A program made the position numbers and the translations under genes. This document shows positions 14,056 to 62,781 of a stretch of DNA of 64,000 nucleotides, piece by piece. Position 1 is the stretch's first letter; each line of letters starts with the position of its first letter. Below the pieces are notes generated by a model. It was given only the letters and a program-made list of their open reading frames with translations. It made no database searches and was not told the DNA's origin. The stretch lies in the sequence record MZ475895.1; one strand, given 5' to 3'.

Positions 14056-14064
14056 TATTTACAG
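14056..14064 (-). promoter_or_regulatory. CTGTAAATA motif
   Basis: 14 nt upstream of the 14042 start; overlaps the upstream Leu-stop codons. Confidence 0.4.
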
Positions 14065-14415
14065 TTTCTGCGGCACACGCTGCCATACGGCGAACTTCAC
14101 GTTCAATGCGCATTCTTCAAGCTCAGCCTCACGTCTAGGCTCGTACTTAGGTGCGTATTGCTGTAGGTGCACAGGACGCTCTACTGAGGCAAGACTGAAT
14201 ACACGTATCGGGTTCGTCACCTGAGAGTACGAATAGTCTTCAATGATAACGAGATTTTCGATGCGGAGAACACCAGAAACTTCAAACACTTCAGGCAAGG
14301 TGCTGGGTTCGATTACTGTCCCCATAACCTTTTCTTGATAGTCAACAAGTGCCTTAATTAAAGCACGACCAACACTAGTAGACAGTGTAAGATTATACTC
14401 TGTGCGGAATTCCAT
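14059..14415 (-). CDS. Hypothetical protein
   Basis: 118 aa; AGGAG RBS. Confidence 0.6.
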   Translation of the reverse strand: MEFRTEYNLTLSTSVGRALIKALVDYQEKVMGTVIEPSTLPEVFEVSGVLRIENLVIIEDYSYSQVTNPIRVFSLASVERPVHLQQYAPKYEPRREAELEECALNVKFAVWQRVPQKL

Positions 14416-14431
14416 GGTGTTCTCCTCAGTA

Positions 14432-14812
14432 TTACATCAGCGCCAGAGTCGGGTCGACGTAGGTGTATTGAAACACTACGTTCCAGCCCGATGGCGTGTT
14501 TCTGTTTGGGTGATAGCGATAGCCATACACCATGATAATGCCTTTCACTTTGTCTGGGTCTTCGAGAGTAGGATTGTATTCAACGTAAGACGGTTCCAGT
14601 TTGAGTGCGTCGGCGATATTGATTGCCCAGTCGTCTAAGTCGTAAGGACTGTCCGGCACTGGCCATGAATACGAATACTTAGGCCAGTGCTCAGCCTGCA
14701 TATCGGTATCTTTTGAAATCCAATCCAGATGGCGGTAACCCATACGAAGGGCGACAGCATGAATCAGGCCTCGGTTGTTCATGTAGCTTTGAAGCTGCTT
14801 GACAGTAAGCAT
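14432..14812 (-). CDS. Hypothetical protein
   Basis: 126 aa; GGAG RBS. Confidence 0.6.
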   Translation of the reverse strand: MLTVKQLQSYMNNRGLIHAVALRMGYRHLDWISKDTDMQAEHWPKYSYSWPVPDSPYDLDDWAINIADALKLEPSYVEYNPTLEDPDKVKGIIMVYGYRYHPNRNTPSGWNVVFQYTYVDPTLALM

Positions 14813-14883
14813 GGAAGTTCTCCATCAGGTAAAAGACAACAGGCACCGAAGTGCCCGTCAGAATCTCAGCGAGATGGCTTAAA

Positions 14884-15354
14884 TTACTTACTAAGTCCGC
14901 GCAGCAGGATAGTTGCTGTTTTAACGAATTGCTTGCGCTTATCGTCAGGCAGTTTGGCATACTCACGCAGCAGGTCCTGCACTTCTTTTTCGTTCCCGAC
15001 GTAACTATCAGTACCGCGATCACCTTCGATACCATCAATGCCTTTCAGCACATTGGTCTTAGTGACACGCATCTTGAAGGTAGCGCGAACAACATCACAG
15101 GCACGCGTCCTATCAGGAGTGGTGCTGATAGTGGAAATGTCGTAGATTGCCTGCACAGAAAAACCTTCAGGATAAGCAGCGAACACTTCTGCCAGATCGA
15201 TATGAGCCATGTTATTAGGAGCTGGAATTTTAGCTTCCATACTAACAGTGAACGTCTCGCCGTCTTCGGTACTGTTGTTACCATCGAAGGCGATTTTACC
15301 ATCCTGTCGCATAGTGTATGCAATCAGTTGATACAGTGGATCAACTAAACTCAT
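14884..15354 (-). CDS. Hypothetical protein
   Basis: 156 aa; coupled to the helicase stop codon. Confidence 0.6.
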   Translation of the reverse strand: MSLVDPLYQLIAYTMRQDGKIAFDGNNSTEDGETFTVSMEAKIPAPNNMAHIDLAEVFAAYPEGFSVQAIYDISTISTTPDRTRACDVVRATFKMRVTKTNVLKGIDGIEGDRGTDSYVGNEKEVQDLLREYAKLPDDKRKQFVKTATILLRGLSK

Positions 15355-16955
15355 CAGAATCTCCTCATGCCCAAGTTGGACGGTTGTCCTTTAACAGGGG
15401 CTTCTGGTTCAAAAAAGTCAGGCAGTTCAGCATCGAGCGCTTCTCCTCTCGATATGACTCCCATCCAGTTACGCAGTTTCTTCGGCGTGCGTTTGGCTTT
15501 CGCATAACCAAACTTCCAACAGAACTTCAATACACCCCGCGCGAAGCCCATCGACTTCTCCATCTTAGGATCGATGAAGACACGAATCACAGGCGTGCGC
15601 TTGTTATCCATCGGCGTAAGAATACGACACGACTCCTGTTTCCAGTTCGGTTCGTTGTTCATCGGCATGATGTAATACAACGTATCCCAACGAGGAACGT
15701 TCAGGCCGCGCTGCATCAGCTTACGCATACCTACCACACAACGAATCTTACCAGCACGCGCATCATCGATAATCGGCTTACGGCGCTTCGCTTCTTTAGC
15801 TCCGCCTAAGAACACAGCCGCCACTTCTTCCATGTAGTGTTCGTTGATACGCTGCACAAGCCGTCGTGCCTGATCGGTAAAGTTGATTGGGATAGCAAGA
15901 GAGCGACCCGCATCAAGATCTCGAATAATCCACTCAAAGATCTTATCGTTACGATCAGGGTGGTTGGCAAGGAACTTACAGAAGTTCGTCCAACCCGCTT
16001 TGCCTGTGAACTTGTTGTTGCTTTGCACCTTCTTCGACGTTTTATGAATCGTCACTTTAGGCACAAGCTCCTCAACAAACGCTTCGGCAATCACAGGACC
16101 GAAGATTGATTCAATCAAATAGTGACGACCGTCTTTACGCTTCGGCGTTGCTGTCAGACCAAATCGATACTTCATTTTAAGAGACGCCAGCACACGGCTG
16201 TAACAGCTTGCGTTACCAGCATGGCACTCATCGACAAACAGCGTACCGTAGTTCTCGTTCAACAACTTGAGTCGCTTCTTCGAGTTCTTACTGTCGCTAA
16301 TCAATGACTGATAGGTCACCAGAATGATCTGGAAGTTCTTATAGTCATCGAGTGTCTTTGGAAAACCATACAACTTCTTGCCGTACTTTTCTTCAAGCTC
16401 AGGCAAGTTCGTCATCTGCTGGATAGTCTCTAAGAAACCATCAAGGAAGTCTTTCTGGTCAGCCATGATAACTGTACGGAAACCCGAATGACATGCACCC
16501 GCAGTACCGATAACAGTCTTACCAGAACGTGGAGGTGCTTTGAACACACCACACAGTTCATCGAACATATCCGCGAACGGTTGCTCTTGGTACTCACGCA
16601 GCTTACCTGTGAACTTCACTTTATAATCGTACGGCACACGACTCGTACCGTTAACGAACTTCACCTCGCTCAGACTAAGACCAGCAGTCTTTTCGAAGCG
16701 GTGCATCTCACCGTACGGGATCGAAACGTAGCGCTTACCCTTAATCTCAGAGTATTTGGCAAGGACGGTAATATCAATCAGGCCACCACGAGAACACGAA
16801 CGGCATTCTTCTGATGGTCGAATTGAACGAAACTCACAGCCCTTACACGCAGCATTATCGAACTCGTAGTGAGTCATCTTCTTTATGATGTTATCGGCAT
16901 CAACGGCCTTAACAGGAATGTGCAGACGACTATCGACCAGTACTTTTGCGGTCAC
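15354..16955 (-). CDS. Superfamily 2 DNA helicase (UvsW/XPB-like) with an N-terminal Cys cluster
   Basis: APPRSGKT, VDECH, GLTATPKRKDG, RGLNVP, QESCRIL; N-terminal CxxC...CxxC. Confidence 0.85.
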   Translation of the reverse strand: MTAKVLVDSRLHIPVKAVDADNIIKKMTHYEFDNAACKGCEFRSIRPSEECRSCSRGGLIDITVLAKYSEIKGKRYVSIPYGEMHRFEKTAGLSLSEVKFVNGTSRVPYDYKVKFTGKLREYQEQPFADMFDELCGVFKAPPRSGKTVIGTAGACHSGFRTVIMADQKDFLDGFLETIQQMTNLPELEEKYGKKLYGFPKTLDDYKNFQIILVTYQSLISDSKNSKKRLKLLNENYGTLFVDECHAGNASCYSRVLASLKMKYRFGLTATPKRKDGRHYLIESIFGPVIAEAFVEELVPKVTIHKTSKKVQSNNKFTGKAGWTNFCKFLANHPDRNDKIFEWIIRDLDAGRSLAIPINFTDQARRLVQRINEHYMEEVAAVFLGGAKEAKRRKPIIDDARAGKIRCVVGMRKLMQRGLNVPRWDTLYYIMPMNNEPNWKQESCRILTPMDNKRTPVIRVFIDPKMEKSMGFARGVLKFCWKFGYAKAKRTPKKLRNWMGVISRGEALDAELPDFFEPEAPVKGQPSNLGMRRF

Positions 16956-16957
16956 AT

Positions 16958-17506: not shown

Positions 17507-17937
17507 TCACCTTTATCAGTAACGAGCAGCGGACTTTCAGGTGTCTTGTGCGGCATAGCAAAGAAGCTGCCGTGATCATCACGATACACGAGCAAGCCAC
17601 CAGACGGACCTTCAGTCGGGCATGTAAAGTTAAACAAACGTTCAAGCGGAGGCATGTAGCCTACAGACACAGCATTGAACGTACACCACTTGGCAGATAC
17701 TTCAATCAGTGAACCGACAACTGTTTCAGCGAGGCGCAGATACGATTGACGGAAGTGATAGCTGTGCTCGATTGGAGACGCGCTATCAATCACTAACTCA
17801 TTGCCGTACACTGCTTTATAGATCAGGCAGAAGCGACGGCGACCACGAGGTGCATTCGGTATTTCATACAGCACATCATGTATGATGGAAGAAACGTCCC
17901 CAACGAGAACGTTTCTTTTGACAGCAAGGCTGATCAT
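17503..17937 (-). CDS. Hypothetical protein
   Basis: 144 aa; ATGA overlaps at both ends. Confidence 0.55.
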   Translation of the reverse strand: MISLAVKRNVLVGDVSSIIHDVLYEIPNAPRGRRRFCLIYKAVYGNELVIDSASPIEHSYHFRQSYLRLAETVVGSLIEVSAKWCTFNAVSVGYMPPLERLFNFTCPTEGPSGGLLVYRDDHGSFFAMPHKTPESPLLVTDKGD

Positions 17938-19112
17938 TGAGGCAGATAACCGAAGTACAACAGGCTGTGCGTGTCGAACTTGTAGTTAAGGCTGAACGCC
18001 GTTAACTTGTTGATGTTCGCACCGTGGAAACCCATCGCGTGTTTTTCTTCGCGTCCGATAGACTTCAACAGCTCACGCATGATACGCAGATCGAGGTGCG
18101 TGCTCAGTTCGCGTTCAACAGGCTTGGCCAGTGACATACTGTCCTGCACGTTACCTGCATCAGTACCAAACTTGAACTTGATCTCTTTCTTCTTCAAGAT
18201 GATCTTTGCACTGGTGTTACCCTTCTTCTCAATCAACGTCGAGATGTTGGTGAACGGTGCAGACAGGTCACCTTTGACAACAACGCCAATCAACGGCTTG
18301 CCGAGTTGCACCAGCATGTTATCCATGTAACGGTAATCTTCATCACTTGCCTGAATCGGAGGCAGCGTCAAAACGAATGAATCAGACTCAGCAGCAAACG
18401 AACTACTGTCAACGTGGAACGTTACCTTCTCTTCACCACAGAAGCGGTAAACGAGGTCGAACATCGCACCTGTCAGACTGAAACGGAACGGCTCTGCTTT
18501 CTTTTTCAGATCGCAAGTATAACGAGAAGACGTCCAGTGACCCGGACTTTGAATCTTCATCGATTTACCATCACACACAACACGACAGATAATGGTCTGG
18601 TTAGTGATCGTATCTTTCATGCTAGTCAGACGCACACCCTGAGTCATTGCGTCGATTACTTCACGCGACATAGGATGACCGCCGGAGATGTGGTGCTTGA
18701 GACCCTGCTCAACCATCGGGATCTGTTCGTCAGACAGAGGACGGATTTTGAAATCAGCTTTGTACTTACCGTTCTGCTCTGCGATAGCAACTTGCTTACC
18801 ATCAAACGTCAAGGTCAATTCTTTACGCTTGGTGATCAGACCGTTCAGGCTGTTCGGGTCGATGTTGAACACCGTATCAGTGTCAGCAGTTGCGCCAGGT
18901 ACCTGATAAGCAACGAACGTATCAGGTGTACGGCCCAGAACGAAAACATCCGACTTGTAGGTTACGATCAGATGGATGTGCGTCAGCTTATCATCTGATT
19001 CAGAGAAACGAGTAACGCTATCAACACGCTTTAAAATGTCAGACAACAACGTGCCTGTAAGCGTAATGTTGCAGGACTTTGATGGTTTTTTAGGAAGTCG
19101 GCAGGTCTTCAT
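17934..19112 (-). CDS. dnaN: DNA polymerase III beta-like sliding clamp
   Basis: 392 aa with three repeated alpha/beta units (e.g. FNIDPNSLNGLI, FSLTGAMFDLV, HLDLRIMRELLKSI); replication-block context; clamp loader present in the window. Confidence 0.6.
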   Translation of the reverse strand: MKTCRLPKKPSKSCNITLTGTLLSDILKRVDSVTRFSESDDKLTHIHLIVTYKSDVFVLGRTPDTFVAYQVPGATADTDTVFNIDPNSLNGLITKRKELTLTFDGKQVAIAEQNGKYKADFKIRPLSDEQIPMVEQGLKHHISGGHPMSREVIDAMTQGVRLTSMKDTITNQTIICRVVCDGKSMKIQSPGHWTSSRYTCDLKKKAEPFRFSLTGAMFDLVYRFCGEEKVTFHVDSSSFAAESDSFVLTLPPIQASDEDYRYMDNMLVQLGKPLIGVVVKGDLSAPFTNISTLIEKKGNTSAKIILKKKEIKFKFGTDAGNVQDSMSLAKPVERELSTHLDLRIMRELLKSIGREEKHAMGFHGANINKLTAFSLNYKFDTHSLLYFGYLPQ

Positions 19113-19374
19113 TTTTGTCCTCTAAAACAAATTGGAGAATACCCTCAATGTTTACAGCTTTCAGTTGCTGTCCTGTCTGCATCAACAGACCATTGAGCAC
19201 GCCGAGTAAATCAGCGCTGTGGCAATTGGGTGCAATCTGATGAACGAAAATATCGTCAGGGATATCACCAGGATTAAGCTGCCAAGCAGTACGCAAGGCA
19301 GCTCCCATGAATGACGGTCGTTCCACCAGTTGCTTGTTCAGAAACGAACAAACATCTTCGGCGCTCAACATCAT
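19090..19374 (-). CDS. Hypothetical protein
   Basis: 94 aa between the polymerase and the clamp. Confidence 0.55.
   Translation of the reverse strand: MMLSAEDVCSFLNKQLVERPSFMGAALRTAWQLNPGDIPDDIFVHQIAPNCHSADLLGVLNGLLMQTGQQLKAVNIEGILQFVLEDKNEDLPTS
19149..19157 (-). promoter_or_regulatory. CTGTAAACA motif upstream of the clamp gene
   Basis: 37 nt upstream of 19112. Confidence 0.5.
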
Positions 19375-22300
19375 TTCTTCGTAATCCTCTTGACTGCGTT
19401 CTTGAGGAGACTGCGGCTGATTTTGATTTTCTTCTTCGCATCACCAGCAGCTGCGGCAGCTTTCTTAGCCTTCTCTTCGGCTTCGTATGCTTCCCACTGC
19501 TTGATGTTCTTCGGAAGTTCTTTCTTCCACAGATCAATGTTCTTCTGATCTTTCTTGGTCAGAGGATTCACTTTGCCCATAGAACGAATCTTGATGCCAT
19601 TAGCCCACAGTTGCTTCTGCATCCACGTGGACATGAGATGGTACTGGTCTTCCATGATGCTATCAAGTTTCTTATCGACGTCGAGATCAGCTTCGCCCAA
19701 CTCATCACGCTTCTGCTCAAGGCCAGCACGAATATGCTTCCTGAGTTGTTCGTAAGAGAAGTCCCAGCCTTCAACATCTTTCTCTGATGCACCGATCTCA
19801 AAGTCGATCTCAGGGACAGATGTGAACTCAAACCCTGGATGACGTTTCTGTACAAGTTCGACCACTGCACTTGTCATGGCACGCTCAATCATATCAAGCG
19901 CGAGGAAAATCCAATCGTAGTGACAGTCAACGGTCAAGGAGTCATGCACCGATACGTTCATATCAAAGTCAGGATAGACACCGTTTGCTTTCCAGTACTC
20001 AAACTTCATGCGGTCCAGAATACGAATCGCACTCATCATCAAGTCAGAACCAAAGCCCTGAACGGGACTGTTTACCGCACGACGGTTACATGCTGCATGA
20101 ACCATGTTCGCGTCTTTGTGCGACTCAGGTAACATGAAGCCCCACAGGTAACGACGACGACCAACAGGCGATTCAACGAAGAAGTTCTGATGAGCAAAAC
20201 TCTGAATCTTATCAAACCACTTCAAGCCAACAGGGAAGCGTTTAAGGAACTTGCCTTTGATCTCTTCGATCTCACCAACTTCACGTCCAGTTGACTTCGC
20301 AAGACCTTTGTTACCCTGCTGGTAGATCAGTCCGAAGATTACTGTCTTAACCGCGTTACGTACGGACTTTGTTACGTCCATTACGTTTGGAATACCGAAG
20401 AAGTATGCGGCGTTAATCTTATGCACGTCACCTTCTGCTTCTACGCGGTGCTTAATCCACGGGTCAGGCACGGTACGATAACGATGACGCAACTCACGAC
20501 CTTGTTCGAATACGTCTGCTACACCTTGGTCACCCGAGATGATTGACCAACCTCTAACTTCGTGCGCCGAGTAGTCGACCTTGATTAACAGGCGATTCTT
20601 ACGCGCAATCAGAATACGTTTGATCAACTTACCCATCTCGCTACGACTCGGAACCTGTTGCAAGTTCGGGTCAGATGCAGATGTACGACCTGTCACAACT
20701 TTTAGATAGCTGTACGTTGGTCGAATCGAACGGTCATGCTTGAAGTCCTCACTCTCGCCCCACAGCTTCAACAGGCTGTTAACGTAGGCGTTCTTGAGTT
20801 TGTACGCTTTACCTAACTTGGTATACAGCGAGACAAGAGGAAGTTCTTTGTACGCCTCTTGGAAGTCTTTATCGAGCTTCGCAGACTTCTTACCGTTATC
20901 ACGGAGTTGCTCGCCTTCCTTGAGAGGTTTCAGGCGCATCACATCGATGAACAGGATTTGCTTATGCTCCTGCTTCGACATATCGAACTTCGTGACCTCG
21001 ACTTTGCCCATAAGACCCATCTTAGGAACATTGTCGTCTCTGCATATCACGGCGTTCGCTGCTTTAACTTCAGGACTCGACATGAACTCGCGTTCAACGT
21101 TTCGAATCTCTTCATTGATTGGACTGTTTGGCAAGTTGAGCTTAAACAGGTAATCAATGTCGGCACCAGCGCCTGTTGTCTCCAAGACACTGAACGCATG
21201 AATCTGGTCGGAGATTTGCTCACCCACCAGCGACTCATACTTCGTGTACTTGCTATCGACGCCACGCTTAATCTGCGACAGATAGATACGGAACGGAACG
21301 ATAACGTCAAGGCCCGCATACTCCTGTACAGCTTCGTCAAGGTCAGAGTCGGCGATTGTCGCACGCATCTCTTTACCAAACGATACTTCGTGATAAACAG
21401 TCGTACCGTACTGCATTGCAAGGTTGGCTAAGTTGTAGTAACCTTGGCCAGTAACGGTCAACAGCGATTTCGCGTTTTCATCGTTACCAAACTCACCCGC
21501 TTGAATATCCCAGACGTCAGCGCAATAACTACGAATGCCAAAGTTGGAACGCATTACGTTCAGGTCAAACTTCGCATTCGTATAGATCTGAACCTTGTTG
21601 TCGTTGTCTTCGAAGTAGTCACGGAACATATCACTAATTCGACGCAACTCTTTACCGCTGAACGGACTGTCTCTGTGATAGATTGGAATCACATAGGCTG
21701 TCTCACCGTCGCACGACAACTGCACGGTCTGAATCTTGTTTTTGATTCGATTCAGGTTCTCGGTTTCGGTATCGACTGCGACCAGCTTAGCACGCTTCAT
21801 CTTTTTCAAGATCTTCTCAAGCTGCTTAACTTTGGTCACATACACCAGCTTCCAGTTGCGATCTTTACCGCAGGTCACTGGCTTGATCGCATAGCGCATA
21901 CCCTTGTTGAGCCACGGCAACATCCAACGTGCCATGTAACCCAGAGTATACGACGATGCGTTTATCACAGCAGGGTTCAGGACTGTGTGATAACTGACGT
22001 TCGGCAGATGAATGAAGCTATGCTTCTTGCCATCGTGCTTGAGCTTGGTGGGTATCTCAACTCCGTACCAGTGCTCATAGTGTTCTTTTGAATACTGAAT
22101 CCTTTCATTGTTGAGCGCCTTGAACGGAGCTTTACCAAAAGTCAGAACGTAGTCTGGCTTGTAGTCAACAATCAGATCACGAATACGATCAGCGAATGCT
22201 TGGTCAGCATCTTCCTTGTACTGCTCAGACTTATCATACGTCTTGAACATGTTGTAGCTAACAACGAGGAAGTTCCAATCGTCTAACGTGGTCTTTGTCG

Positions 22301-22535
22301 GGAACACGTCTTCGAGATACTGAATCTGATTCAAGAACAAATCGCCTTCTGTGCTGCTAAAGATCTTACCATTACGCAGGTCTTCAGTTGGCATGTGATC
22401 GAGGACAAGTAGTGCTTTACCGCCTTTGGCGCTTTTACTAACGCCTTTTAAAATACGAACCCCGTCATAAGTCTGCACGTCGGCAAACTGTTCAGGTGGA
22501 TCGAAGTCAAGAGCAACGTGCTTGATTTTCACCAT
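19371..22535 (-). CDS. polA: Family A DNA polymerase with an N-terminal UDG-like domain and a 3'-5' exonuclease
   Basis: Exo VAVDTETE / NAKFDL / YAGLD; TGRTSASDPNLQQVP; motif A DYSAHEVR; motif B RNAVKTVIFGLIY; motif C VHDS. Confidence 0.95.
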   Translation of the reverse strand: MVKIKHVALDFDPPEQFADVQTYDGVRILKGVSKSAKGGKALLVLDHMPTEDLRNGKIFSSTEGDLFLNQIQYLEDVFPTKTTLDDWNFLVVSYNMFKTYDKSEQYKEDADQAFADRIRDLIVDYKPDYVLTFGKAPFKALNNERIQYSKEHYEHWYGVEIPTKLKHDGKKHSFIHLPNVSYHTVLNPAVINASSYTLGYMARWMLPWLNKGMRYAIKPVTCGKDRNWKLVYVTKVKQLEKILKKMKRAKLVAVDTETENLNRIKNKIQTVQLSCDGETAYVIPIYHRDSPFSGKELRRISDMFRDYFEDNDNKVQIYTNAKFDLNVMRSNFGIRSYCADVWDIQAGEFGNDENAKSLLTVTGQGYYNLANLAMQYGTTVYHEVSFGKEMRATIADSDLDEAVQEYAGLDVIVPFRIYLSQIKRGVDSKYTKYESLVGEQISDQIHAFSVLETTGAGADIDYLFKLNLPNSPINEEIRNVEREFMSSPEVKAANAVICRDDNVPKMGLMGKVEVTKFDMSKQEHKQILFIDVMRLKPLKEGEQLRDNGKKSAKLDKDFQEAYKELPLVSLYTKLGKAYKLKNAYVNSLLKLWGESEDFKHDRSIRPTYSYLKVVTGRTSASDPNLQQVPSRSEMGKLIKRILIARKNRLLIKVDYSAHEVRGWSIISGDQGVADVFEQGRELRHRYRTVPDPWIKHRVEAEGDVHKINAAYFFGIPNVMDVTKSVRNAVKTVIFGLIYQQGNKGLAKSTGREVGEIEEIKGKFLKRFPVGLKWFDKIQSFAHQNFFVESPVGRRRYLWGFMLPESHKDANMVHAACNRRAVNSPVQGFGSDLMMSAIRILDRMKFEYWKANGVYPDFDMNVSVHDSLTVDCHYDWIFLALDMIERAMTSAVVELVQKRHPGFEFTSVPEIDFEIGASEKDVEGWDFSYEQLRKHIRAGLEQKRDELGEADLDVDKKLDSIMEDQYHLMSTWMQKQLWANGIKIRSMGKVNPLTKKDQKNIDLWKKELPKNIKQWEAYEAEEKAKKAAAAAGDAKKKIKISRSLLKNAVKRITKK

Positions 22536-22574: not shown

Positions 22575-22583
22575 TATTTACAG
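22575..22583 (-). promoter_or_regulatory. CTGTAAATA motif upstream of polA
   Basis: 40 nt upstream of 22535, immediately downstream of a terminator. Confidence 0.6.
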
Positions 22584-22596
22584 ATTTAGAAACGAG

Positions 22597-22620
22597 AAAG
22601 GGCAGCCGAAGCCACCCTTT
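22597..22620 (-). terminator. Intrinsic terminator
   Basis: GGGUGGC-UUCG-GCUGCCC-UUUCUC. Confidence 0.8.
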
Positions 22621-22626
22621 GTGTTT

Positions 22627-23883: not shown

Positions 23884-24435
23884 TTACTTGCGGTTTTTAG
23901 TCCAGTTAGAGTTCTGAGGTTTCTTTTCGCTTTGTGGCGAAGTGTTTTCCTCGTTAATCTCCTCCTCGTCCTCATCTTCGTCCTCGACGACAGGCTCAGC
24001 AGCAGGCGCGGCTTCGATCTTAGTCACTTCGAGAATTTGAGAGGGCAGTGGATTCTGATTTACAGATGAAGCGACAGCAGCAGGTTCGCTTACTGTAGGC
24101 TCTACAGCAGCAGTCGCACCTACAACATGTTCGTGGACGATCTGCTTAGTCAGCAACGCGCCTTTCTCAGCGAGAATCTGATCAGCACGTTCTTGGTCCC
24201 ACTTAACCCACAGGATATCGAGACCCTTGTGTGCGTACATGAAACCCTGAGGCAGCTTACCACGGCCGTTGAATGGCAGACCGTTAGAAGGAACGCCAGG
24301 CTCGAACTCGTCCATCAGTTCCCACTTGCGCTTAGCCGTGATACACTTCGGCCCCCACACGCCATCACATGCACCATCATACAGATCGAGCATGGTCATG
24401 ATGACTTGGAGCTTCTGATAGAATTTATTCAGCAT
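23884..24435 (-). CDS. Protein with an N-terminal peptidoglycan-binding-like domain and an acidic tail
   Basis: LQVIMTMLDLYDGACDGVWGPKCITA resembles PG_binding_1 (LQxxL...DGxxGxxT); acidic EDEDEDEEE run. Confidence 0.5.
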   Translation of the reverse strand: MLNKFYQKLQVIMTMLDLYDGACDGVWGPKCITAKRKWELMDEFEPGVPSNGLPFNGRGKLPQGFMYAHKGLDILWVKWDQERADQILAEKGALLTKQIVHEHVVGATAAVEPTVSEPAAVASSVNQNPLPSQILEVTKIEAAPAAEPVVEDEDEDEEEINEENTSPQSEKKPQNSNWTKNRK

Positions 24436-32220: not shown

Positions 32221-32239
32221 GAGAACCTCCTACAGTTTA

Positions 32240-32248
32240 TTTTACAGT
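32240..32248 (-). promoter_or_regulatory. CTGTAAAAA variant motif upstream of the HNH gene
   Basis: 20 nt upstream of 32220. Confidence 0.3.
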
Positions 32249-39604: not shown

Positions 39605-39613
39605 TATTTACAG
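39605..39613 (-). promoter_or_regulatory. CTGTAAATA motif upstream of sbcD
   Basis: 27 nt upstream of 39578, directly after a terminator. Confidence 0.6.
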
Positions 39614-39616
39614 AAT

Positions 39617-40973: not shown

Positions 40974-40979
40974 GATCAC

Positions 40980-40988
40980 TATTTACAG
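40980..40988 (-). promoter_or_regulatory. CTGTAAATA motif upstream of the SLOG gene
   Basis: 7 nt upstream of the ATG; overlaps the upstream Leu-stop codons. Confidence 0.3.
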
Positions 40989-49823: not shown

Positions 49824-49832
49824 TATTTACAG
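49824..49832 (-). promoter_or_regulatory. CTGTAAATA motif heading the sbcC-containing operon
   Basis: 38 nt upstream of 49786, after a terminator. Confidence 0.6.
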
Positions 49833-51590: not shown

Positions 51591-51600
51591 GTAAAATTAG
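51591..51600 (-). promoter_or_regulatory. Candidate late-type motif CTAATTTTAC
   Basis: 32 nt upstream of 51559, after a terminator. Confidence 0.5.
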
Positions 51601-51669: not shown

Positions 51670-52947
51670 CTACTTCTTCTTTTTCTTCTTCTTGGGCTTT
51701 TCGTCTTCGTCGTCATCTTCGACTTCGTTACCCAATTTCACAGACAGCTTGCCTTCATAAATGTCGGCCATCAGACTGAGGATAGTTGATTCCAACATAA
51801 TGTCAGCAGGCACGGAGGTACTGTTGAATGCTACCTCTGCTTCTGCCAGTGCTTTCTGCAAATAGATCAGGCAAACAAGATTGACCTTAATCTTCTCTTG
51901 CTTAACCATATTCAGGAACATCTTGAGGCCAGCAGACTGCCACTTGTTTGTGTCAGAGTAATGACCGAGTGCACCGTGAAGTACCCAGCGTGCTTTCGCT
52001 ACGATTGCTCGTGGGTTGTTTGCTTCACGCAGGAACTGAATGACGCCGATAAGATCCATCGCAATGAACGCACCGATAGTCTGAACTGCTTTGCCTTCCA
52101 TTTCGATTTCTGGATCGGCTGCCGCAAGTTCTGCCACCAGCTTCTTATCAAACGCTTCACCACCTTTAACTGACGCAAAGATGTTTTGCATCATCGTGAT
52201 TGCACCACGCATCTGACCGCCTGAATACTCGGCAACCTGATGCAACGCTGATTCAGCTTTATCACGCGCTTTATCTTTCTTAGGCATGATGCCAAGAATA
52301 TCAGCGATCTCTGACAGACGCTTCGCAATGATGTCAGTAGGAATCGGCCTGATAGGAAGTTGTGTCATACGACTGATCATCGTATCTTTCATCTTCTCAG
52401 GGTTCGTGGTCACAAAGATGAACACGACATGCGCTGGTGGTTCTTCAATGATCTTGAGGAACTTCGATTCGGCTGCGCTCGACATGAGGTGCGCTTCATC
52501 GAGAATGAACACACGGCGCTTGAACATAGGTGCCAGAGGTGCTGAGTCAACGATGCGCTGCGAGCCTTCAACTTTACCAGAGTCGCTACCCATATCGAAC
52601 TCTTGCACGTCAGGGTGCTGGCCGTTGTTGTACATCATGCGACACGAGGCACACTTACCGCACGCGCTAAACGAATCACAGTTGATGTACTTTGCGACGA
52701 GACGCGCAAACGTTGTTTTGCCGCTACCCAGATGACCTGTGATAATCATCGTTGATGGAACTGTTTTCGACTTCTGCCAACCGTTCATGATCTTGACGAT
52801 GTGGTCTTGGCCTACATAGTCTTCGATACGAGTCGGTCGGAACTGAGCGGCAAAGTTTACCGTAGTCAGTTCAGTAGAAGATTCGGACTTGGAACTATCT
52901 GAACCAAAGTCGCGTTTCTTCTTCTTTTTCTTTTCTTCTTTCGCCAT
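51670..52947 (-). CDS. dnaX: DNA polymerase III gamma/tau-like clamp loader ATPase
   Basis: FRPTRIEDYVGQ, GHLGSGKTT, Zn motif CDSFSACGKCASC, ILDEAH, LKIIEEPP, ISR (SRC-like). Confidence 0.9.
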   Translation of the reverse strand: MAKEEKKKKKKRDFGSDSSKSESSTELTTVNFAAQFRPTRIEDYVGQDHIVKIMNGWQKSKTVPSTMIITGHLGSGKTTFARLVAKYINCDSFSACGKCASCRMMYNNGQHPDVQEFDMGSDSGKVEGSQRIVDSAPLAPMFKRRVFILDEAHLMSSAAESKFLKIIEEPPAHVVFIFVTTNPEKMKDTMISRMTQLPIRPIPTDIIAKRLSEIADILGIMPKKDKARDKAESALHQVAEYSGGQMRGAITMMQNIFASVKGGEAFDKKLVAELAAADPEIEMEGKAVQTIGAFIAMDLIGVIQFLREANNPRAIVAKARWVLHGALGHYSDTNKWQSAGLKMFLNMVKQEKIKVNLVCLIYLQKALAEAEVAFNSTSVPADIMLESTILSLMADIYEGKLSVKLGNEVEDDDEDEKPKKKKKKK

Positions 52948-52983: not shown

Positions 52984-52992
52984 TATTTACAG
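52984..52992 (-). promoter_or_regulatory. CTGTAAATA motif upstream of the clamp loader
   Basis: 37 nt upstream of 52947, after a terminator. Confidence 0.6.
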
Positions 52993-53298: not shown

Positions 53299-53337
53299 AA
53301 CATCTCCTGAATATTAAACCTCAACGTTCTTGAATTA

Positions 53338-53346
53338 TGTTTACAG
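53338..53346 (-). promoter_or_regulatory. CTGTAAACA motif
   Basis: 40 nt upstream of 53298. Confidence 0.5.
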
Positions 53347-53392
53347 ATTGCTTCGGTCCGTCCTTGCGATCTAAAGTCAGAATAGTCTTAAA

Positions 53393-53639
53393 CTCCAATA
53401 AGCTCTTGTTAGAACGTATTGGAGTCCACCCTGTCAGATGACGGTCGTTCAGGGCTTTCTCCCCGCACACTTATATAGCGCCGTGCGGCAGGCTGCGCTC
53501 GCGAGGTCTTATGTTTTCCACGGCAGGTGGTCCAGGAGGTAGCGTCCTCTGAAAAGATACCCGCCGCACAACAGCCTCGCTATCGGCCAATCAGCGATAC
53601 GCGGTGTTACGCTGAATCGACCTAAATGACTCTGGCCGA
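53393..53639 (-). ncRNA. Candidate structured non-coding RNA (multiple helices, predicted pseudoknot); family unknown
   Basis: ORF-free GC-rich gap with at least five complementary pairs; several mismatches become G.U wobbles only on the minus strand. Confidence 0.5.
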
Positions 53640-53650
53640 GTCGTGTACAA

Positions 53651-53703
53651 AAAAAAGAGTTCGGTCCCAATCAAAAAGATGGCGAAAAAGAAAGGGACCG
53701 AAC
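53651..53703 (-). terminator. Hairpin plus U8 tract (terminator/attenuator) upstream of the candidate ncRNA
   Basis: Perfect 10-bp arms GTTCGGTCCC / GGGACCGAAC, 25-nt loop, followed by UCUUUUUUUU on the minus strand. Confidence 0.6.
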
Positions 53704-53748
53704 AAAAGACACTCAGCGCAAACTCCTTATGCACTGTTTTTGTACTTG

Positions 53749-53758
53749 GGAAAATTAG
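53749..53758 (-). promoter_or_regulatory. Candidate late-type motif CTAATTTTCC
   Basis: Heads the non-coding gap; an AAGGAG element follows about 25 nt downstream. Confidence 0.35.
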
Positions 53759-53785
53759 TGACATTCCCTTTTATTCAGAAAATTC

Positions 53786-54361
53786 TTAGTCGATGGTTAA
53801 TTGCATCTGACGCAGAGTTTTGAGAAAATGTCTGCGTTGGAAAGATTCGATGCGGTACGGATGATCGATATGTTTGTTCCAGCCCTGATTAAATAGCATA
53901 ATGTTGTCGGGCAATTTCTCGGCACCATTCCACTTCGGTTTATCATCTACAAGCAGGTAATTGCCTGCACCATGAACCGAATCAAGGAACGCAATTTTAT
54001 CAGGGTAAATCATTGGACTAATCACATGGAAGTGGTCTATCACGTGGAGAAGTCCGCGCATCGCTAGACGCGAGTAACGAGTCCCAAGTTCGTGATAGCC
54101 GCGATGAGTGCAAACACCAACAGAGTAACCCTGCTGCACAAGATACTCCAGTGTGCCCTTTGCGTACTGACGCATACGCGCATCGAGCATGAACGTCGGA
54201 CTGTTCAGTATCTCACTGAAATGAATACCACCATTCTCAGGCGTAATGTATTCACCTTCACCGATAGTAACTCCTTTGTCAGCGAGTTTCTTACGCATCA
54301 CAGGGTGGGTCTCGAAAAACGTATCATCCAAATCGAAAAAGATTTTCTTTAGCTTTTGCAT
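53786..54361 (-). CDS. HAD-superfamily 5'(3')-deoxyribonucleotidase-like protein
   Basis: IFFDLDDTF, VCTHRG, DK, LLVDDKP. Confidence 0.8.
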   Translation of the reverse strand: MQKLKKIFFDLDDTFFETHPVMRKKLADKGVTIGEGEYITPENGGIHFSEILNSPTFMLDARMRQYAKGTLEYLVQQGYSVGVCTHRGYHELGTRYSRLAMRGLLHVIDHFHVISPMIYPDKIAFLDSVHGAGNYLLVDDKPKWNGAEKLPDNIMLFNQGWNKHIDHPYRIESFQRRHFLKTLRQMQLTID

Positions 54362-56952: not shown

Positions 56953-57969
56953 TTACTTGTACTGTCCCGTCACAACAAAGACGAGAGAATCAGGTTTCTT
57001 CCGCCCGTTAACAATGAGATACTTGAACGGACGTGTGGGTTCAAGCTGGCCTTCGACCACTTGAGTGATTGCAATATCTTTGACTTCACCAAAGGTCAGA
57101 GCGTTGTCCATCTGATCGAAGGAGAAGGCATTTGAAAGCGAAACAGAGTTGTGAGACTCTACCGTAATACCTTCAGGCTTCTTGGAGGCACTACGTTTCG
57201 AGTCCAGCCACTTCTGCCAATCGAACATCGCATGGTTCATTGAACGAGAGACGAGCGAACGGGGCACTTTCCCTTTCAACGATTTGCGAAACTCGGTCAC
57301 AACTTCCGACACAGGAGGACCAGCATTAACGCGACGACGATCTTTCAGAATCGTGCGCATCTTATCAGACCAGTAGTTGTAGGCATCAACTCGAATCTGA
57401 ATGTATTCTTCAAGGCGCTGAGCCTGTTCGAGGGTACACTCAATTTCGAACGTCACCTGACTTCCACGTTCTGTACCGTTGTGTTTGATAGCAGCTTTCT
57501 CTGCTTTCGTCTCGCTGATCAGTTTTTCTTTTACACACGCCGCCCATGCATATGCAAATGTGAGACGCATGTCAGGATAACGGTTCATCACCTGCACGCG
57601 TGTTTGAAGCAACAACGGAATGGCATAGCCCAGATGACAACGACGATCAATAAAGGCAGAACGGAGTTCTCCAATATCTTTGTCCAGCTCGTTGAGGTCA
57701 TTGAACAAATAACCCGAGTCACGGTACGACTGAGAAATGTGGTTACCTTCACGAAGTACATCGTCGATGGTCAAACCTTTTTCAACGATGCTGTTGTATG
57801 CTTCTTCCAAAGTAACATCAGGCCAAGTGCGATAACCTGTTTGGTCTAAAGTAAGATGACGGAAGCAATACAATTCATACATGTGCAAAAAGTCCGCGAA
57901 TGGCAGACTTTTGGGATATACGAATTTTTTAATCACCTTCTTCGGTTTGATAACTGCTTTCTTGATCAT
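56953..57969 (-). CDS. Protein with a C-terminal TnpB/Cas12f-like WED-REC lobe and no RuvC
   Basis: TFEIECTLEQAQRL...RVDAYNY has the same TxEQ...L...YN spacing as HTH_OrfB_IS605; ends exactly where RuvC-I would begin. Confidence 0.5.
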   Translation of the reverse strand: MIKKAVIKPKKVIKKFVYPKSLPFADFLHMYELYCFRHLTLDQTGYRTWPDVTLEEAYNSIVEKGLTIDDVLREGNHISQSYRDSGYLFNDLNELDKDIGELRSAFIDRRCHLGYAIPLLLQTRVQVMNRYPDMRLTFAYAWAACVKEKLISETKAEKAAIKHNGTERGSQVTFEIECTLEQAQRLEEYIQIRVDAYNYWSDKMRTILKDRRRVNAGPPVSEVVTEFRKSLKGKVPRSLVSRSMNHAMFDWQKWLDSKRSASKKPEGITVESHNSVSLSNAFSFDQMDNALTFGEVKDIAITQVVEGQLEPTRPFKYLIVNGRKKPDSLVFVVTGQYK

Positions 57970-59659
57970 TGCGTTCTCGCTGGAGTTTGGCGGCTATTTT
58001 GAGATATTCTCTATTTACAGTTTCTGGGTCTGTAGCGAACCCTCGCTTAGTGAAAAGGTTACGCTTGACCTTACCCATGCTATAGCCGTTATCCCAGAGT
58101 TTCATGAATATCAGACAGTTTAACGTCGGGTCCATGAATGGTTTTTCTTTCAGAGCAACGTCACCAGAATACTTGGTCAGCAGGATAGCGCCGTCGAACT
58201 CTGCGCTACACCACTCGGCCTCAGCTAAGACCTTGAGCAGGTTGTAATTCTCCATACCCTGAATCAAATGACTAAGGATGGTATACTGGTCACGCTTGTA
58301 CCGAGCAACAGGAACTCGATGCGAACACCCCGAAGCATTTTTGAAGAAGTGATCTGTCGTGCGAGAATAAGAGGCGTTCTTAATTCTCAGGCACAACTCC
58401 TCAACGACAAGAGATGCAGGCTCGAACATAGCCTTCCACTTACCCCAGATGCGGGTGGCATAGTTCTTGATTTCTTCCTCTGTCATTTTGTACTTCTTGC
58501 CTACGTTTTGTACCTTAGTGTCAGATACAAGTTGACGGAAAATATCCGTCATCATAGCGCCGGGATCTTCCTTTTCCGAAGAGGTATCAAACGTCTGTTT
58601 GAAATACCTCTGATTACTCCACCCGCTATATATGCCGCCGTAGTTCAAAGTCTTGGACGTGCCCCTCGTGATCTTTAGCGTCTTCGCCACGTAGTCATGG
58701 TCAAGATGTTCAAGCATCGGACATTCGAGGCCGTACTCCGACATGAGGTCTAGCAGCAAAACAATCTGAGCATTCGGCATATCAAAGTTACGACCATAAG
58801 AGTGATCGAAACATAGCAGCTTAACAATCTTCGGCAGTGCAGCCGCTGTACCGAATAGACGACTACCAACATGGTTCATCGAATACTCGTCGTAGAACTC
58901 CACCAGCCTATCATTCGGGTTATCGTTGACAAGACGTAACCCAAAGCGGCAAATCTTCTTCAGGAAAGAATCAAGGCGCATGTGCAAACCGTAACGTCGG
59001 TTAGTACGAGCGTTCTCCTTAATGTCCAAGAAGCGGTCCAAATAAAATCTATAGGGACGCTGATTAGCCTGAGCACGATTGATAAGCTCAATCACTTCCC
59101 TGTTCTTGCTTTTGTGGTAGATAAAGTTATGAGGGCGTCTAAACGGCTTCGCCTTCACTTCTTTTTCAAAAGCGGCAGCAACCAAGTCATCCTGTGACTG
59201 AAAAATCGCCCTGCGACGATTCGGCTTCAACAAATTGTACATGGGCTCCTCAAGAGCACACAAATCTGCTAAAGTTTGGGCAAGAACGGTGTTAAGCGAA
59301 TACTTACGGGCGATCCCCTTAATGTAATCAAAGCGGGTTTTGTTCACCTTACGGTCTAACCACAAGCGAACACCGTCATTTTTCTGACGAACCATCGCAT
59401 AACGCATCTTTTCATGAGCCCGCATGTAACTATAGGTCACTACGGTTTCATTATAGACGTTTCGTTTCTCCATCATGCGGGATTTATCGATCAAATGGAT
59501 GAAAAACCACGCCAAACTTTCGTAAAACTTATCTGATTTAGCGCCTTTCGGCTTGGGGCACTGATAAATCATGTCCCAGAAATACTTATGAAAGGATTTA
59601 GGTACCGCGCCCGCCCATCCTGGGGGCACAGCTTTCTTCCCGTACACGGGTTTGGCCAT
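57929..59659 (-). CDS. Divergent PolA/T7-RNAP-superfamily polymerase (TV-Pol-like)
   Basis: GSRLF, NFDMPNAQ (motif A), RGTSKTLNYGGIY (motif B), LIQGMEN, AEFDGAIL (motif C) in canonical order. Confidence 0.6.
   Translation of the reverse strand: MAKPVYGKKAVPPGWAGAVPKSFHKYFWDMIYQCPKPKGAKSDKFYESLAWFFIHLIDKSRMMEKRNVYNETVVTYSYMRAHEKMRYAMVRQKNDGVRLWLDRKVNKTRFDYIKGIARKYSLNTVLAQTLADLCALEEPMYNLLKPNRRRAIFQSQDDLVAAAFEKEVKAKPFRRPHNFIYHKSKNREVIELINRAQANQRPYRFYLDRFLDIKENARTNRRYGLHMRLDSFLKKICRFGLRLVNDNPNDRLVEFYDEYSMNHVGSRLFGTAAALPKIVKLLCFDHSYGRNFDMPNAQIVLLLDLMSEYGLECPMLEHLDHDYVAKTLKITRGTSKTLNYGGIYSGWSNQRYFKQTFDTSSEKEDPGAMMTDIFRQLVSDTKVQNVGKKYKMTEEEIKNYATRIWGKWKAMFEPASLVVEELCLRIKNASYSRTTDHFFKNASGCSHRVPVARYKRDQYTILSHLIQGMENYNLLKVLAEAEWCSAEFDGAILLTKYSGDVALKEKPFMDPTLNCLIFMKLWDNGYSMGKVKRNLFTKRGFATDPETVNREYLKIAAKLQRERNDQESSYQTEEGD
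58012..58020 (-). promoter_or_regulatory. CTGTAAATA motif upstream of the TnpB-lobe gene
   Basis: 43 nt upstream of 57969, inside the upstream CDS. Confidence 0.5.
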
Positions 59660-59693
59660 CTTGGAACCTCAAAAAGCTCGTTCTCTTGGCTGA

Positions 59694-59702
59694 TCTTTAC
59701 AG
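59694..59702 (-). promoter_or_regulatory. CTGTAAAGA variant upstream of the divergent polymerase
   Basis: 35 nt upstream of 59659. Confidence 0.45.
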
Positions 59703-59715
59703 AATCCTGCTTGTT

Positions 59716-59955
59716 CTACGTCAGAGACTCAAATTCTATCAGATAGTTGATTAGGTTAGGTAGATTAGGTATGGCATAGCATCTTATGCAGCATGAGCGC
59801 ACTATATTCACACGGAATACAGCCTTCTCTCCCAAATCCCTAGCGCCTAGACGCATATCCCTAGCCCACAGACATATCGTAGGGGTCGAAAACGCGAAAA
59901 CCGCTTTAGCATGGTTATTTGGTGCCAATTCAGCGGAATTGATTTCTAAGCGCAC
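59716..59955 (-). CDS. Possible small ORF (may be non-coding)
   Basis: 79 aa with a GTG start and weak RBS; region rich in short TAGG/CCTA repeats. Confidence 0.25.
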   Translation of the reverse strand: MRLEINSAELAPNNHAKAVFAFSTPTICLWARDMRLGARDLGEKAVFRVNIVRSCCIRCYAIPNLPNLINYLIEFESLT

Positions 59956-60001
59956 TTTGAGACTATTCTTATTGCCGTAGGTCGATTCTGTAGGAAAGTG
60001 G

Positions 60002-60661
60002 TTATTTTTTGCGCGAAATTTGCTGATTCAGTTTTTTGCCGATCTGCGTCAAAACGCGCTCAACGGTCTCTCCGTCACGCTCACCGATAGCCATAGCGAG
60101 CCTTTCGCCCTGTTCACGCGATAGCTCAGGCATAATCAGCTTGAGCATCTTTGATCGCGCCTTTGCAGACTTTGATTTGCCTTTTGACAGCGATTGCGTT
60201 TCCATTTCGGCAGCAACACGGCTCATTGTGCGCTGCACGCGACGATCTGCGAATATATCACCGAAGATATTGCCAAACAGGTCTTGGAACGAGCGTCCGC
60301 CACCAAATATCTCGTCCTTAGTGAAGCGCACTTCCTTTCCTAGCGCATTACGCTTAACGCTGTGCGTGCTTTCCACTTCGTTTTGGACGCGTGCACCTTC
60401 GATGAAGTTCTCATCAGGCCGTGATTTCTTACCTTCAGCACCGGGCTTAGTGACGCCGTTACGCAGCTCAGCACGCCCCTCAACAGCCGCATCAGGGTCA
60501 AACATGTCATCAGTGTTGACGCTCTGATTAGGGTCAAAGGGAATCTTGTCTGTCAGCTTGTTTTCATCTGGCCACGAACGAGGGATATCCGACGCAGGTT
60601 GAGGGCTATTCGTCATATCACCGTTCTTCTCGCTGTTCAGACTCACATAAATCTTGGTCAT
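60002..60661 (-). CDS. Putative head-associated protein with an SxS-type leader
   Basis: MTKIYVSLNSEK; internal QSLSK; low-complexity N-half. Confidence 0.55.
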   Translation of the reverse strand: MTKIYVSLNSEKNGDMTNSPQPASDIPRSWPDENKLTDKIPFDPNQSVNTDDMFDPDAAVEGRAELRNGVTKPGAEGKKSRPDENFIEGARVQNEVESTHSVKRNALGKEVRFTKDEIFGGGRSFQDLFGNIFGDIFADRRVQRTMSRVAAEMETQSLSKGKSKSAKARSKMLKLIMPELSREQGERLAMAIGERDGETVERVLTQIGKKLNQQISRKK

Positions 60662-61777: not shown

Positions 61778-61796
61778 ATTAATCTCCTTTGTTGCT

Positions 61797-61806
61797 CTGA
61801 AATTAT
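61797..61806 (-). promoter_or_regulatory. Candidate late-type motif ATAATTTCAG
   Basis: 20 nt upstream of 61777 in the divergent intergenic region. Confidence 0.4.
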
Positions 61807-61875
61807 TGTGCTGTTTCCGTGCCTTTCACATCAAAAATATTTATTTAGTAGCACAATGAAAATACGGAGTTTCAT

Positions 61876-62424
61876 ATGCGCGTTCTTTCAGGCGACCCGG
61901 GTAAGGTTAACTTCGCGCTGTCTGTCCAGGAGTTCAAGGACAAACGCATTACTGTTATAGGCACGCGGATGTTCCGCAGTCCTATTCAGAACCTGCATTA
62001 CGATATGCGTCAGCCCACAAAAGAGTTTCTTGCCGAGCTTGAGCTAATATGGAAACTCTACGGACCGTTCGATGCCATGTGCTTTGAGCGCTTCCAGTCT
62101 CGTGGTCTTGGCGGCAACACCATTGAAGCTATCAGCCTCATGCTCGGTGTCATATCGTTCTTTGCGTTGAAGAAGAAATGCCCTCTTGATTTAATCACTG
62201 CTAGTCAGTGGAAAAATGCTTTCAACCGCAGCATGGACCTTAAAGGCTATTATGCGGAATACAATCTGACGTCAAAGAAAAGCCAAAAAGCAATTCATGA
62301 ATTTGATGCGAGCCTTATTGGCGTCTATACCTTTTATCGTCATTCAGAAATCAAACCGTTTGCAGGCTTCAATCGTATCATCGATGCGTATGTTCCACGA
62401 TTCCTGGAAGCACCTGTTCTTTGA
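61876..62424 (+). CDS. RuvC-like Holliday junction resolvase
   Basis: VLSGDPG, CFERF, HEFDASLIG catalytic acidic pattern. Confidence 0.75.
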   Translation: MRVLSGDPGKVNFALSVQEFKDKRITVIGTRMFRSPIQNLHYDMRQPTKEFLAELELIWKLYGPFDAMCFERFQSRGLGGNTIEAISLMLGVISFFALKKKCPLDLITASQWKNAFNRSMDLKGYYAEYNLTSKKSQKAIHEFDASLIGVYTFYRHSEIKPFAGFNRIIDAYVPRFLEAPVL

Positions 62425-62433
62425 GGAAATGAA

Positions 62434-62769
62434 ATGAACATTGAACTTGAAACCCGTGTAATGAACATGCTGGCAGGCATTAGCCGTCATCTGGTTAAGC
62501 TTGGTAAAGGTGATGTGGCTGCCTACCAAGATCGTTTCTTCTACGAGCATTCATTCAGTACGCTGAACAAAGAAGACGACGAGACCGATGTGGTCGCTGT
62601 GTTGCGCGAAAAGATTGTGGCAGAACTTGCCGTGCGCGACATTGCACTGACCGAAGATTATCAGCCTGTGCTTACCTACAGACCGATGATTTTGCATCCG
62701 ACAAACGAAGGTGAGTTCGTGTCGATCGTGGTTGGTTTCCCACTCGACGCACCAGTGGTCCTGCCATAA
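62434..62769 (+). CDS. Hypothetical protein
   Basis: 111 aa; GAGGA RBS. Confidence 0.6.
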   Translation: MNIELETRVMNMLAGISRHLVKLGKGDVAAYQDRFFYEHSFSTLNKEDDETDVVAVLREKIVAELAVRDIALTEDYQPVLTYRPMILHPTNEGEFVSIVVGFPLDAPVVLP

Positions 62770-62772
62770 ATT

Positions 62773-62781
62773 CTGTAAATG
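62773..62781 (+). promoter_or_regulatory. CTGTAAATG motif on the plus strand
   Basis: 33 nt upstream of 62814; orientation flips with gene direction. Confidence 0.5.

Follow-up and report, generated by a model that had tools for sequence, protein, structure and literature searches.

The window analyzed here, 64,000 nucleotides (nt) of sequence record MZ475895, comes from the Erwinia amylovora jumbo phage pEa_SNUABM_14 (264 kb, Snuvirus; 100% identity by megablast), its first base corresponding approximately to record base 124,001. In this window the box CTGTAAATA, which we call M1, recurs shortly before genes of DNA replication and recombination and reads in their direction. We consider it likely that M1 is a phage-specific, -35-independent middle promoter used by the host RNA polymerase together with a phage factor, most likely the sigma factor gp244. 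The full element spans 12 bp, (A)(A/T)(T/A)CTGTAAA(T/C)A.

In the proposed mechanism, TAAATA would serve as a -10-like hexamer at -12 to -7, preceded by a CTG specificity triplet at -15 to -13 and an A/T-rich triplet at -18 to -16. Since the phage lacks an RNA polymerase, recognition of the box must fall to the host core enzyme. A phage-made factor, most likely gp244 (sigma regions 1.2 to 2.4, with no detectable region 4), would redirect that enzyme to M1 and thereby drive the middle genes, those that replicate and recombine DNA and serve nucleotide metabolism, both here and in related phages. A companion box, (A/G)GCTAATTT, would drive the virion genes, presumably as a late class.

RESULTS

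M1 is enriched before start codons and co-oriented with genes

Genome-wide work was done on the RefSeq twin pEa_SNUABM_7 (NC_061451, genus Snuvirus), which is 99% identical and available whole with annotation. Genes in this genome fall into three strand blocks, and the window lies mostly within a long minus-strand block. The original prediction had proposed genome-wide enrichment as a check; CTGTAAA indeed proved to be the most enriched 7-mer before start codons, with 34 of its 55 sense copies between -90 and -12 (p = 8e-20). The distance from motif to start codon is usually 34 to 60 nt and ranges from 15 to more than 100 nt. Rather than occurring equally in both orientations, 56 of 58 CTGTAAA copies are co-oriented with the genes. 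As had been claimed from the window, where the copy at 62773 lies on the plus strand, the motif flips with gene direction, and in the twin genome its orientation changes exactly where the gene blocks do.

A third-order Markov model of the twin genome predicts 0.7 sense copies of CTGTAAATA; 17 are present, and none is antisense. The same model predicts 10.4 antisense copies of CTGTAAA where 2 are seen, a depletion that suggests selection against stray antisense promoters. In the window itself, CTGTAAANA matches 11 times, always on the minus (coding) strand, against an expectation of 2.42 ± 1.65, and none of 100 shuffles reaches 11.

The box lies at the -10 position of a predicted promoter without a -35 element

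To describe the anatomy of the box, we aligned 40 copies located 25 to 130 nt before a start codon. The conserved block consists of A, A/T, T/A, then CTGTAAA, T/C, and A. An A/T-rich triplet had been noted before the motif, and the alignment bears it out (A at -3 in 31/40, A/T at -2 in 36/40, and T/A at -1 in 37/40). None of the positions between -45 and -4 relative to the box has an information content appreciably above zero, which leaves no -35 element, and nothing is conserved near -30, where a MotA-type box would lie.

Downstream of the box, 34 of the 40 sites have a purine after a six-base gap. We extended the comparison to six whole genomes, five besides the first. A pyrimidine-purine step, the usual signature of a bacterial start site, is fixed at +13/+14 from the T of TGTAAA in all six, and the purine is present at 29/35, 26/30, 13/14, 10/10, 24/29, and 13/15 predicted starts. 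Because this step is conserved at a fixed distance, we place the predicted transcription start at the purine 7 nt after the last A of the box, which puts the box at -15 to -7. The hexamer is then TAA(A)(T/C)A, with A in 26/40 and T in 4/40 sites at position -7, and an invariant TG directly abuts it at -14/-13.

Four window copies (22575, 39605, 49824, and 52984) had been described as lying close to a terminator, and this is the case: each has a G+C hairpin and T-run 0 to 20 nt ahead of it, and genome-wide seven copies follow intrinsic terminators at this distance. At the four window copies the -35 location falls inside the terminator hairpin, which fits a promoter that does not need a -35 element. 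Near-identical terminator hairpins, GGG(T/C)GGCttcgGCTGCCC followed by a T-run, recur directly upstream of promoter boxes, and each such pair is a repeated terminator-promoter cassette (Table 1).

The box at 40980 is arranged differently. The upstream gene terminates at the TAA contained in this box, and the YpsA/SLOG-like gene that follows has its ATG 6 nt past the box, at the predicted start site, and no Shine-Dalgarno sequence. This arrangement (40467-40988) is kept in the phages Yoloswag and AD1, and the transcript may be leaderless. It is also the exception to the 27 to 43 nt that the original prediction gave for the distance to start codons, a range that is roughly right if counted from the 3' end of the motif.

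M1 and its regulon are conserved in phages of other host genera

The box precedes orthologous PolA, clamp, clamp loader, primase, SSB, SbcD, SbcC, and ligase genes in other phages, with conservation seen in JA29, Lu11, PaBG, Vibrio phage GR7B, and Xanthomonas phage PhiXhv-12. Relatives carrying it thus infect four other host genera, Dickeya, Pseudomonas, Vibrio, and Xanthomonas. Orthologues of the twin genome and JA29 tend strongly to agree in having the box (odds ratio 40, p = 1e-9), and no gene swaps between M1 and the second box described below. Yoloswag and AD1 retain ctgtaaata at all eight window sites compared, although their flanking sequences have diverged.

The core pattern TGTAAATA outnumbers a reversed-pattern control in Lu11 (40 versus 5), JA29 (22 versus 8), GR7B (29 versus 8), and PhiXhv-12 (19 versus 2). 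The 7-mer with the strongest upstream enrichment is TGTAAAT or CTGTAAA in GR7B and PhiXhv-12; with crude gene calls, upstream enrichment is clear in PaBG and weaker in Lu11. Through sigma homologues, three uncultured relatives were identified that also carry ACTGTAAATA before genes, among them a primase gene.

All six genomes share a regulon of PolA, clamp, clamp loader, primase, SSB/UvsX, SbcD, SbcC, ligase, and a large helicase, and in each the box precedes the replication or recombination gene itself or the first gene of its operon. The SSB, primase, SbcD, and phrog_20094 genes carry it in both the Erwinia phage and Lu11. In none of the six genomes does M1 precede the capsid, portal, sheath, tube, or baseplate genes; distant phages likewise keep M1, and their virion genes are without it.

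Each genome encodes a single sigma factor of the gp244 family

According to a review, sigma homologues are frequent in jumbo phages that lack an RNA polymerase, and their presumed role is to redirect the host enzyme (PMC13282480). The twin genome has one annotated "RNA polymerase sigma factor," gp244 (phrog_17569), which as a single sequence has no Pfam match; its homologue in pEa_SNUABM_14 is 100% identical (tblastn). Further tblastn homologues occur in Alexandravirus phages, Y3, Yoloswag, Dickeya JA phages, and Yersinia phage fHe-Yen9-02, in the Pseudomonas phages Lu11, PaBG, and HRDY3 (34 to 38% identity; Lu11, 36%), and, at 23 to 26%, in Vibrio phage GR7B, Xanthomonas phage PhiXhv-12, and Pseudomonas putida phages such as Peetri. 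In relatives the gene lies in a syntenic series of primase, Cas4-like gene, sigma, SSB, and RecA/UvsX.

The gp244-family profile aligns with RpoD over regions 1.2 to 2.4 only, including the WW melting motif (E = 3e-6). The AlphaFold model of a 96%-identical database protein (mean predicted local distance difference test score [pLDDT] of 81) gives almost exclusively E. coli sigma-70 among its top 50 PDB fold matches. The sigma model has a C-terminal three-helix domain, and the nearest viral models include one from Achromobacter phage Motura. A six-frame search of five genomes found exactly one open reading frame (ORF) with Sigma70_r2 per genome, in each case the gp244-family gene. Sigma70_r4 had no match in four of these genomes; in the fifth, Lu11, it matched once and weakly, at a place other than the sigma gene. 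The T4 gp55 (phrog_234) and gp33 (phrog_254) families had no match at E ≤ 1 in any of the five.

We could not link the sigma factor to one box by co-occurrence: both boxes and the sigma gene are present throughout the Lupandier group. A second candidate sigma, gp345, is the orthologue of PaBG gp112, which has been called weakly sigma-like (PMC7412058). This assignment was unsupported by profile comparison with PDB sequences, by Pfam, and by hhalign to the gp244 family (probability 0.15%).

A second box with the same geometry precedes virion genes

The next most enriched upstream word in the twin genome is the second box, (A/G)GCTAATTT, of whose 19 sense copies 14 lie upstream of genes, 30 to 50 nt before the starts of virion-module genes. 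CTAATTT boxes in the window stand 30 to 70 nt before the starts of virion-module and other genes. The box is kept before orthologues in JA29 (odds ratio 459, p = 1e-11), Lu11, and PaBG. Its geometry is that of M1, with TAATTT at -12 to -7 and a purine at the predicted start in 81% of pooled sites. Judging from these sequences, it is probably a late promoter class.

Near-consensus sigma-70 promoters are rare; those at positions 261,098 and 261,266 of the twin genome, which lie beyond the window, stand out. The two best (TTGAGA-17-TATACT and TTGACC-17-TATAAT) share one intergenic region (NC_061451 261045-261401) before gp342-gp346, which likely form an early transcription unit that includes gp345. 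The picture that emerges is a three-class program, with host-type early promoters, CTGTAAATA for DNA metabolism, and GCTAATTT for virions.

Within the window, an RNA polymerase ADP-ribosylase-like gene (phrog_832, E = 2.6e-13; 50343-50894, minus strand) lies in a unit headed by a CTAATTT box. By analogy, this placement would suit an enzyme of host takeover like T4 Alt, made late and possibly packaged in the virion.

Box copies and neighboring genes in the window

All 12 copies listed in the original prediction are present, and two more, at 10594 and 8964, had been missed (Table 1). As had been described, some copies lie within upstream coding sequences, those at 19149 and 58012 among them. The stray near-match at 24057 is real and is located inside a gene. 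Comparison of the downstream genes with Pfam and PHROGs upheld the labels sliding clamp, PolA, SbcD-like, SbcC-like operon, and clamp loader. Two other labels were not upheld. The supposed TnpB-lobe gene (57929-59659) has no Pfam match and only a PHROG of unknown function. The supposed divergent polymerase past 62773 is not a polymerase: the 591-amino-acid gene after the plus-strand box (62814-64000 and beyond) has Big_6 and CarboxypepD_reg domains and is of unknown function. For the DnaG-type primase further on (twin genome 190169-191275, minus strand), a separate CTGTAAATG box is located between divergent genes.

Neither Rfam nor a tRNA scan gave any match in the window. Two unusually long stretches have no annotated gene, 53300-53786 (approximately 490 nt) and 59660-60002 (approximately 340 nt); the former holds a CTAATTT box and a possible unannotated small ORF and has no Rfam match.

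TABLE 1 Promoter boxes, further motif copies, and recurring terminators (window coordinates unless stated; distances run from the 5' C of the motif to the start codon)
Feature	Sequence	Position	Strand	Context	Conservation or remark
M1 box	gaaaCTGTAAATA	14056..14064	minus	34 nt before start (14030) of 206-amino-acid "DNA polymerase" family protein, phrog_20094	Predicted start site 14049; kept before orthologue in AD1, Yoloswag, JA29, Lu11, GR7B
M1 box	aaagCTGTAAACA	19149..19157	minus	45 nt before sliding-clamp gene (17934-19112); within upstream coding sequence	Kept in Yoloswag, AD1, JA29, GR7B
M1 box	aaatCTGTAAATA	22575..22583	minus	48 nt before PolA (19371-22535); 6 nt past GGGTGGCttcgGCTGCCC + T-run terminator	Kept in JA29, PaBG, GR7B, PhiXhv-12, Yoloswag, AD1
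Degenerate M1 box	CTGTAAAAT / acaaCTGTAAAAT	32239..32247	minus	27 nt before HNH endonuclease gene (31855-32220)	Given earlier as 32240; orthologous sites are perfect CTGTAAATA in Yoloswag and AD1
M1 box	tattCTGTAAATA	39605..39613	minus	35 nt before SbcD-like gene (38499-39578); adjoins terminator T-run	Kept in JA29, Lu11, PaBG, Yoloswag, AD1
M1 box	acaaCTGTAAATA	40980..40988	minus	15 nt before ATG of YpsA/SLOG-like gene (40467-40973)	
M1 box	aataCTGTAAATA	49824..49832	minus	46 nt before first small gene of operon ending in SbcC-like gene (47062-49383); 20 nt past a terminator	
M1 box	aaatCTGTAAATA	52984..52992	minus	45 nt before clamp-loader gene (51670-52947); 9 nt past terminator T-run	Kept in JA29, PhiXhv-12, Yoloswag, AD1
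M1 box	caatCTGTAAACA	53338..53346	minus	~46 nt before 69-amino-acid gene of unknown function	
M1 box	gaaaCTGTAAATA	58012..58020	minus	51 nt before 338-amino-acid gene of unknown function (56953-57969); within upstream coding sequence	
M1 variant	gattCTGTAAAGA	59694..59702	minus	43 nt before 576-amino-acid gene of unknown function (57929-59659, phrog_30690)	
M1 variant	aattCTGTAAATG	62773..62781	plus	41 nt before plus-strand gene (62814-63473)	JA29 orthologue carries ACACTGTAAATA
Extra copy	CTGTAAACA	10594..10602	minus	Deep within gene 9521-11197; no A/T triplet; next start >1 kb away	Probably not a promoter
Extra copy		8964-8972	plus	Antisense to genes	
Extra copy	CTGTAAATC	24057..24065	minus	In gene; next start 191 nt away; predicted start dinucleotide CC	Probably not a promoter
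Second box	(A/G)(G)CTAATTT	33966-33972, 37583-37589, 38450-38456, 51594-51600, 53752-53758	minus		
Second box, internal copy	CTAATTT	2847-2853			
Recurring terminator hairpins	GGG(T/C)GGCttcgGCTGCCC + T-run	~22590-22625, 39614-39640; twin genome 19060-19095, 35920-35955		Directly upstream of promoter boxes	

DISCUSSION

Relation to known promoters

The closest known motif is in Pseudomonas phage Lu11, whose genome paper is reportedly that of Adriaenssens et al. (2012, J Virol 86:6369). Its RefSeq record, NC_017972, annotates 16-bp features as "putative middle/late promoter" with the sequence aaaaCTGTAAATAnnnnGTA. Their core, aaaaCTGTAAATA, is identical to the Erwinia box and is followed by an A at the same +15 position, that is, at the predicted start site. 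They precede orthologous genes (SSB, primase, and SbcD), and the same sigma family (Lu11 gp174) is encoded nearby. The label there is middle/late, the 16-bp extension with GTA is only weakly kept in the Erwinia phage, and a virion box of the GCTAATTT type has no separate annotation in the Lu11 record. Lu11 and Erwinia boxes alike are predicted promoters. One Lu11 feature with this label spans 107991..280538, evidently a coordinate error in NC_017972.

Among tested systems, phiEco32 comes nearest: its sigma factor gp36 has no region 4 and recognizes one box, tAATGTAtA, from which transcription starts 6 to 8 bp downstream (PMC8948821). Its middle/late promoters resemble M1 in having a single box with a TGTA core and no -35 element, and in being read by host core enzyme with a region-4-less phage sigma, a reader that for M1 is our proposal. 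The phiEco32 promoters and their starts were mapped experimentally, whereas the M1 start 7 nt past the box comes from conservation of the pyrimidine-purine step, and gp36 is likened to gp244 by architecture. phiEco32 also belongs to an unrelated lineage (it is a podovirus) and uses one box for middle and late genes, compared with two boxes here.

A full-text literature search for the motif found no phage paper. M1 is a real and clade-wide element, very probably a promoter, but a largely expected one, the motif being already annotated in Lu11 and the principle known from T4 and phiEco32. What is new here is the start-site geometry, the split into replication and virion classes that each have their own box, and the conservation of the box as far out as that of the sigma gene itself.

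Alternative explanations

The original prediction of a phage-specific middle promoter is supported by every sequence-level test that we ran. Nevertheless, M1 could instead be used by the host sigma-70 holoenzyme, either with a phage activator of the T4 MotA/AsiA kind or as a plain extended -10 promoter, leaving the phage sigma for the late GCTAATTT class. We regard this as unlikely, though it explains several observations: the box occupies exactly the place of a -10 hexamer, with T at -12, A at -11, and TG just upstream; the sigma gene stands behind M1 boxes, as expected of a middle gene that makes a late factor; and the RNA polymerase ADP-ribosylase-like gene is present. M1 shares with the bacterial extended -10 promoter (TGnTATAAT) its independence of a -35 element and a TG just upstream of a hexamer beginning with TA. 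It differs in that its TG lies, by the predicted start, at -14/-13 rather than at -15/-14, position -7 is A rather than the near-invariant T, and C at -15 and the A/T triplet are conserved. A canonical sigma-70 promoter would have TTGACA 16 to 18 bp upstream and TATAAT with T at -7, and M1 has neither. T4 middle promoters combine a sigma-70 -10 element with a MotA box near -30, whereas here the positions expected for an activator box, -30 or -35, show no conservation. The "activator site" that had been offered as an alternative is less likely for the same reason, the box itself being at the -10 position. Finally, the box is unchanged in phages of Erwinia, Dickeya, Pseudomonas, Vibrio, and Xanthomonas, which points to a phage-borne reader.

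An element acting in RNA, such as a processing site in the 5' untranslated region or a translational operator of replication genes comparable to that of T4 RegA, would account for a strand-specific motif shortly upstream of the starts of functionally related genes. It is nonetheless improbable. After the terminators that precede some copies (4 in the window, 7 genome-wide) there is no room for another promoter, and a motif located there would not be transcribed. Moreover, spacing to the start codon varies from 15 to more than 100 nt while that to the pyrimidine-purine step is fixed, one conserved case has its ATG 6 nt after the box, and the motif has no Rfam match.

Slightly less probable still is a late promoter of the T4 type, which would depend on a minimal sigma resembling gp55, on gp33, and on the sliding clamp. 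The T4 late promoter TATAAATA lies at -13 to -6 (PMC1524935), and TGTAAATA equals it at seven of eight positions in nearly the same register (predicted -14 to -7); both are 8-bp, A/T-rich boxes of the -10 type without a -35 element, and a clamp and clamp loader are encoded here as well. Membership in the T4 late system (gp55, gp33, and gp45) is excluded by the absence of gp55 and gp33 homologues and by the wrong regulon: M1 drives clamp, clamp loader, and polymerase genes, and virion genes have a different box or none. Although some copies lie within coding sequences and one supplies a stop codon, origin by chance or as a by-product of composition, for example codon usage or stop-codon context, is excluded by the shuffles, by the Markov expectation for CTGTAAATA, and by orthologous sites that are kept while their flanks diverge.

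Several points weigh against our preferred reading, a middle promoter recognized by host RNA polymerase with gp244. The sigma gene lies in an M1-driven unit in every genome examined; if sigma reads M1, the circuit needs priming by read-through from early promoters. By analogy with T4 gp55 or SPO1 gp33/34, the sigma could instead be the late factor that reads GCTAATTT, with another factor reading M1. The TG is one base nearer the hexamer than in the classical extended -10 promoter, and about one-third of CTGTAAA copies lie away from any start codon. In addition, gene calls in the relatives are crude ones made for this analysis, and a search of public sequencing runs found the sequence in DNA runs only.

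A more ambitious extension of the preferred reading is, in our view, doubtful as a whole. It holds that the entire deep clade of sigma-encoding jumbo phages, infecting Erwinia, Dickeya, Yersinia, Pseudomonas, Vibrio, and Xanthomonas and including many uncultured relatives, would share a two-letter, -35-less code in which CTG-TAAATA marks replication and recombination genes and RGC-TAATTT, with the same geometry, marks virion genes. A single region-4-less sigma would read both boxes, an accessory factor would switch between them, and at least one mRNA would be leaderless.

Implications

These jumbo phages of Erwinia and Dickeya are candidates for the control of fire blight and soft rot, and annotation leaves the majority of their genes as hypothetical. 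With a reliable code of promoters, one would place many of these genes in temporal classes and mark operon boundaries, and one would have a clear, testable model of how a jumbo phage without a polymerase reprograms host RNA polymerase. Because the box is conserved across phages of distant hosts, a result on the sigma factor in one phage would explain transcription across the clade.

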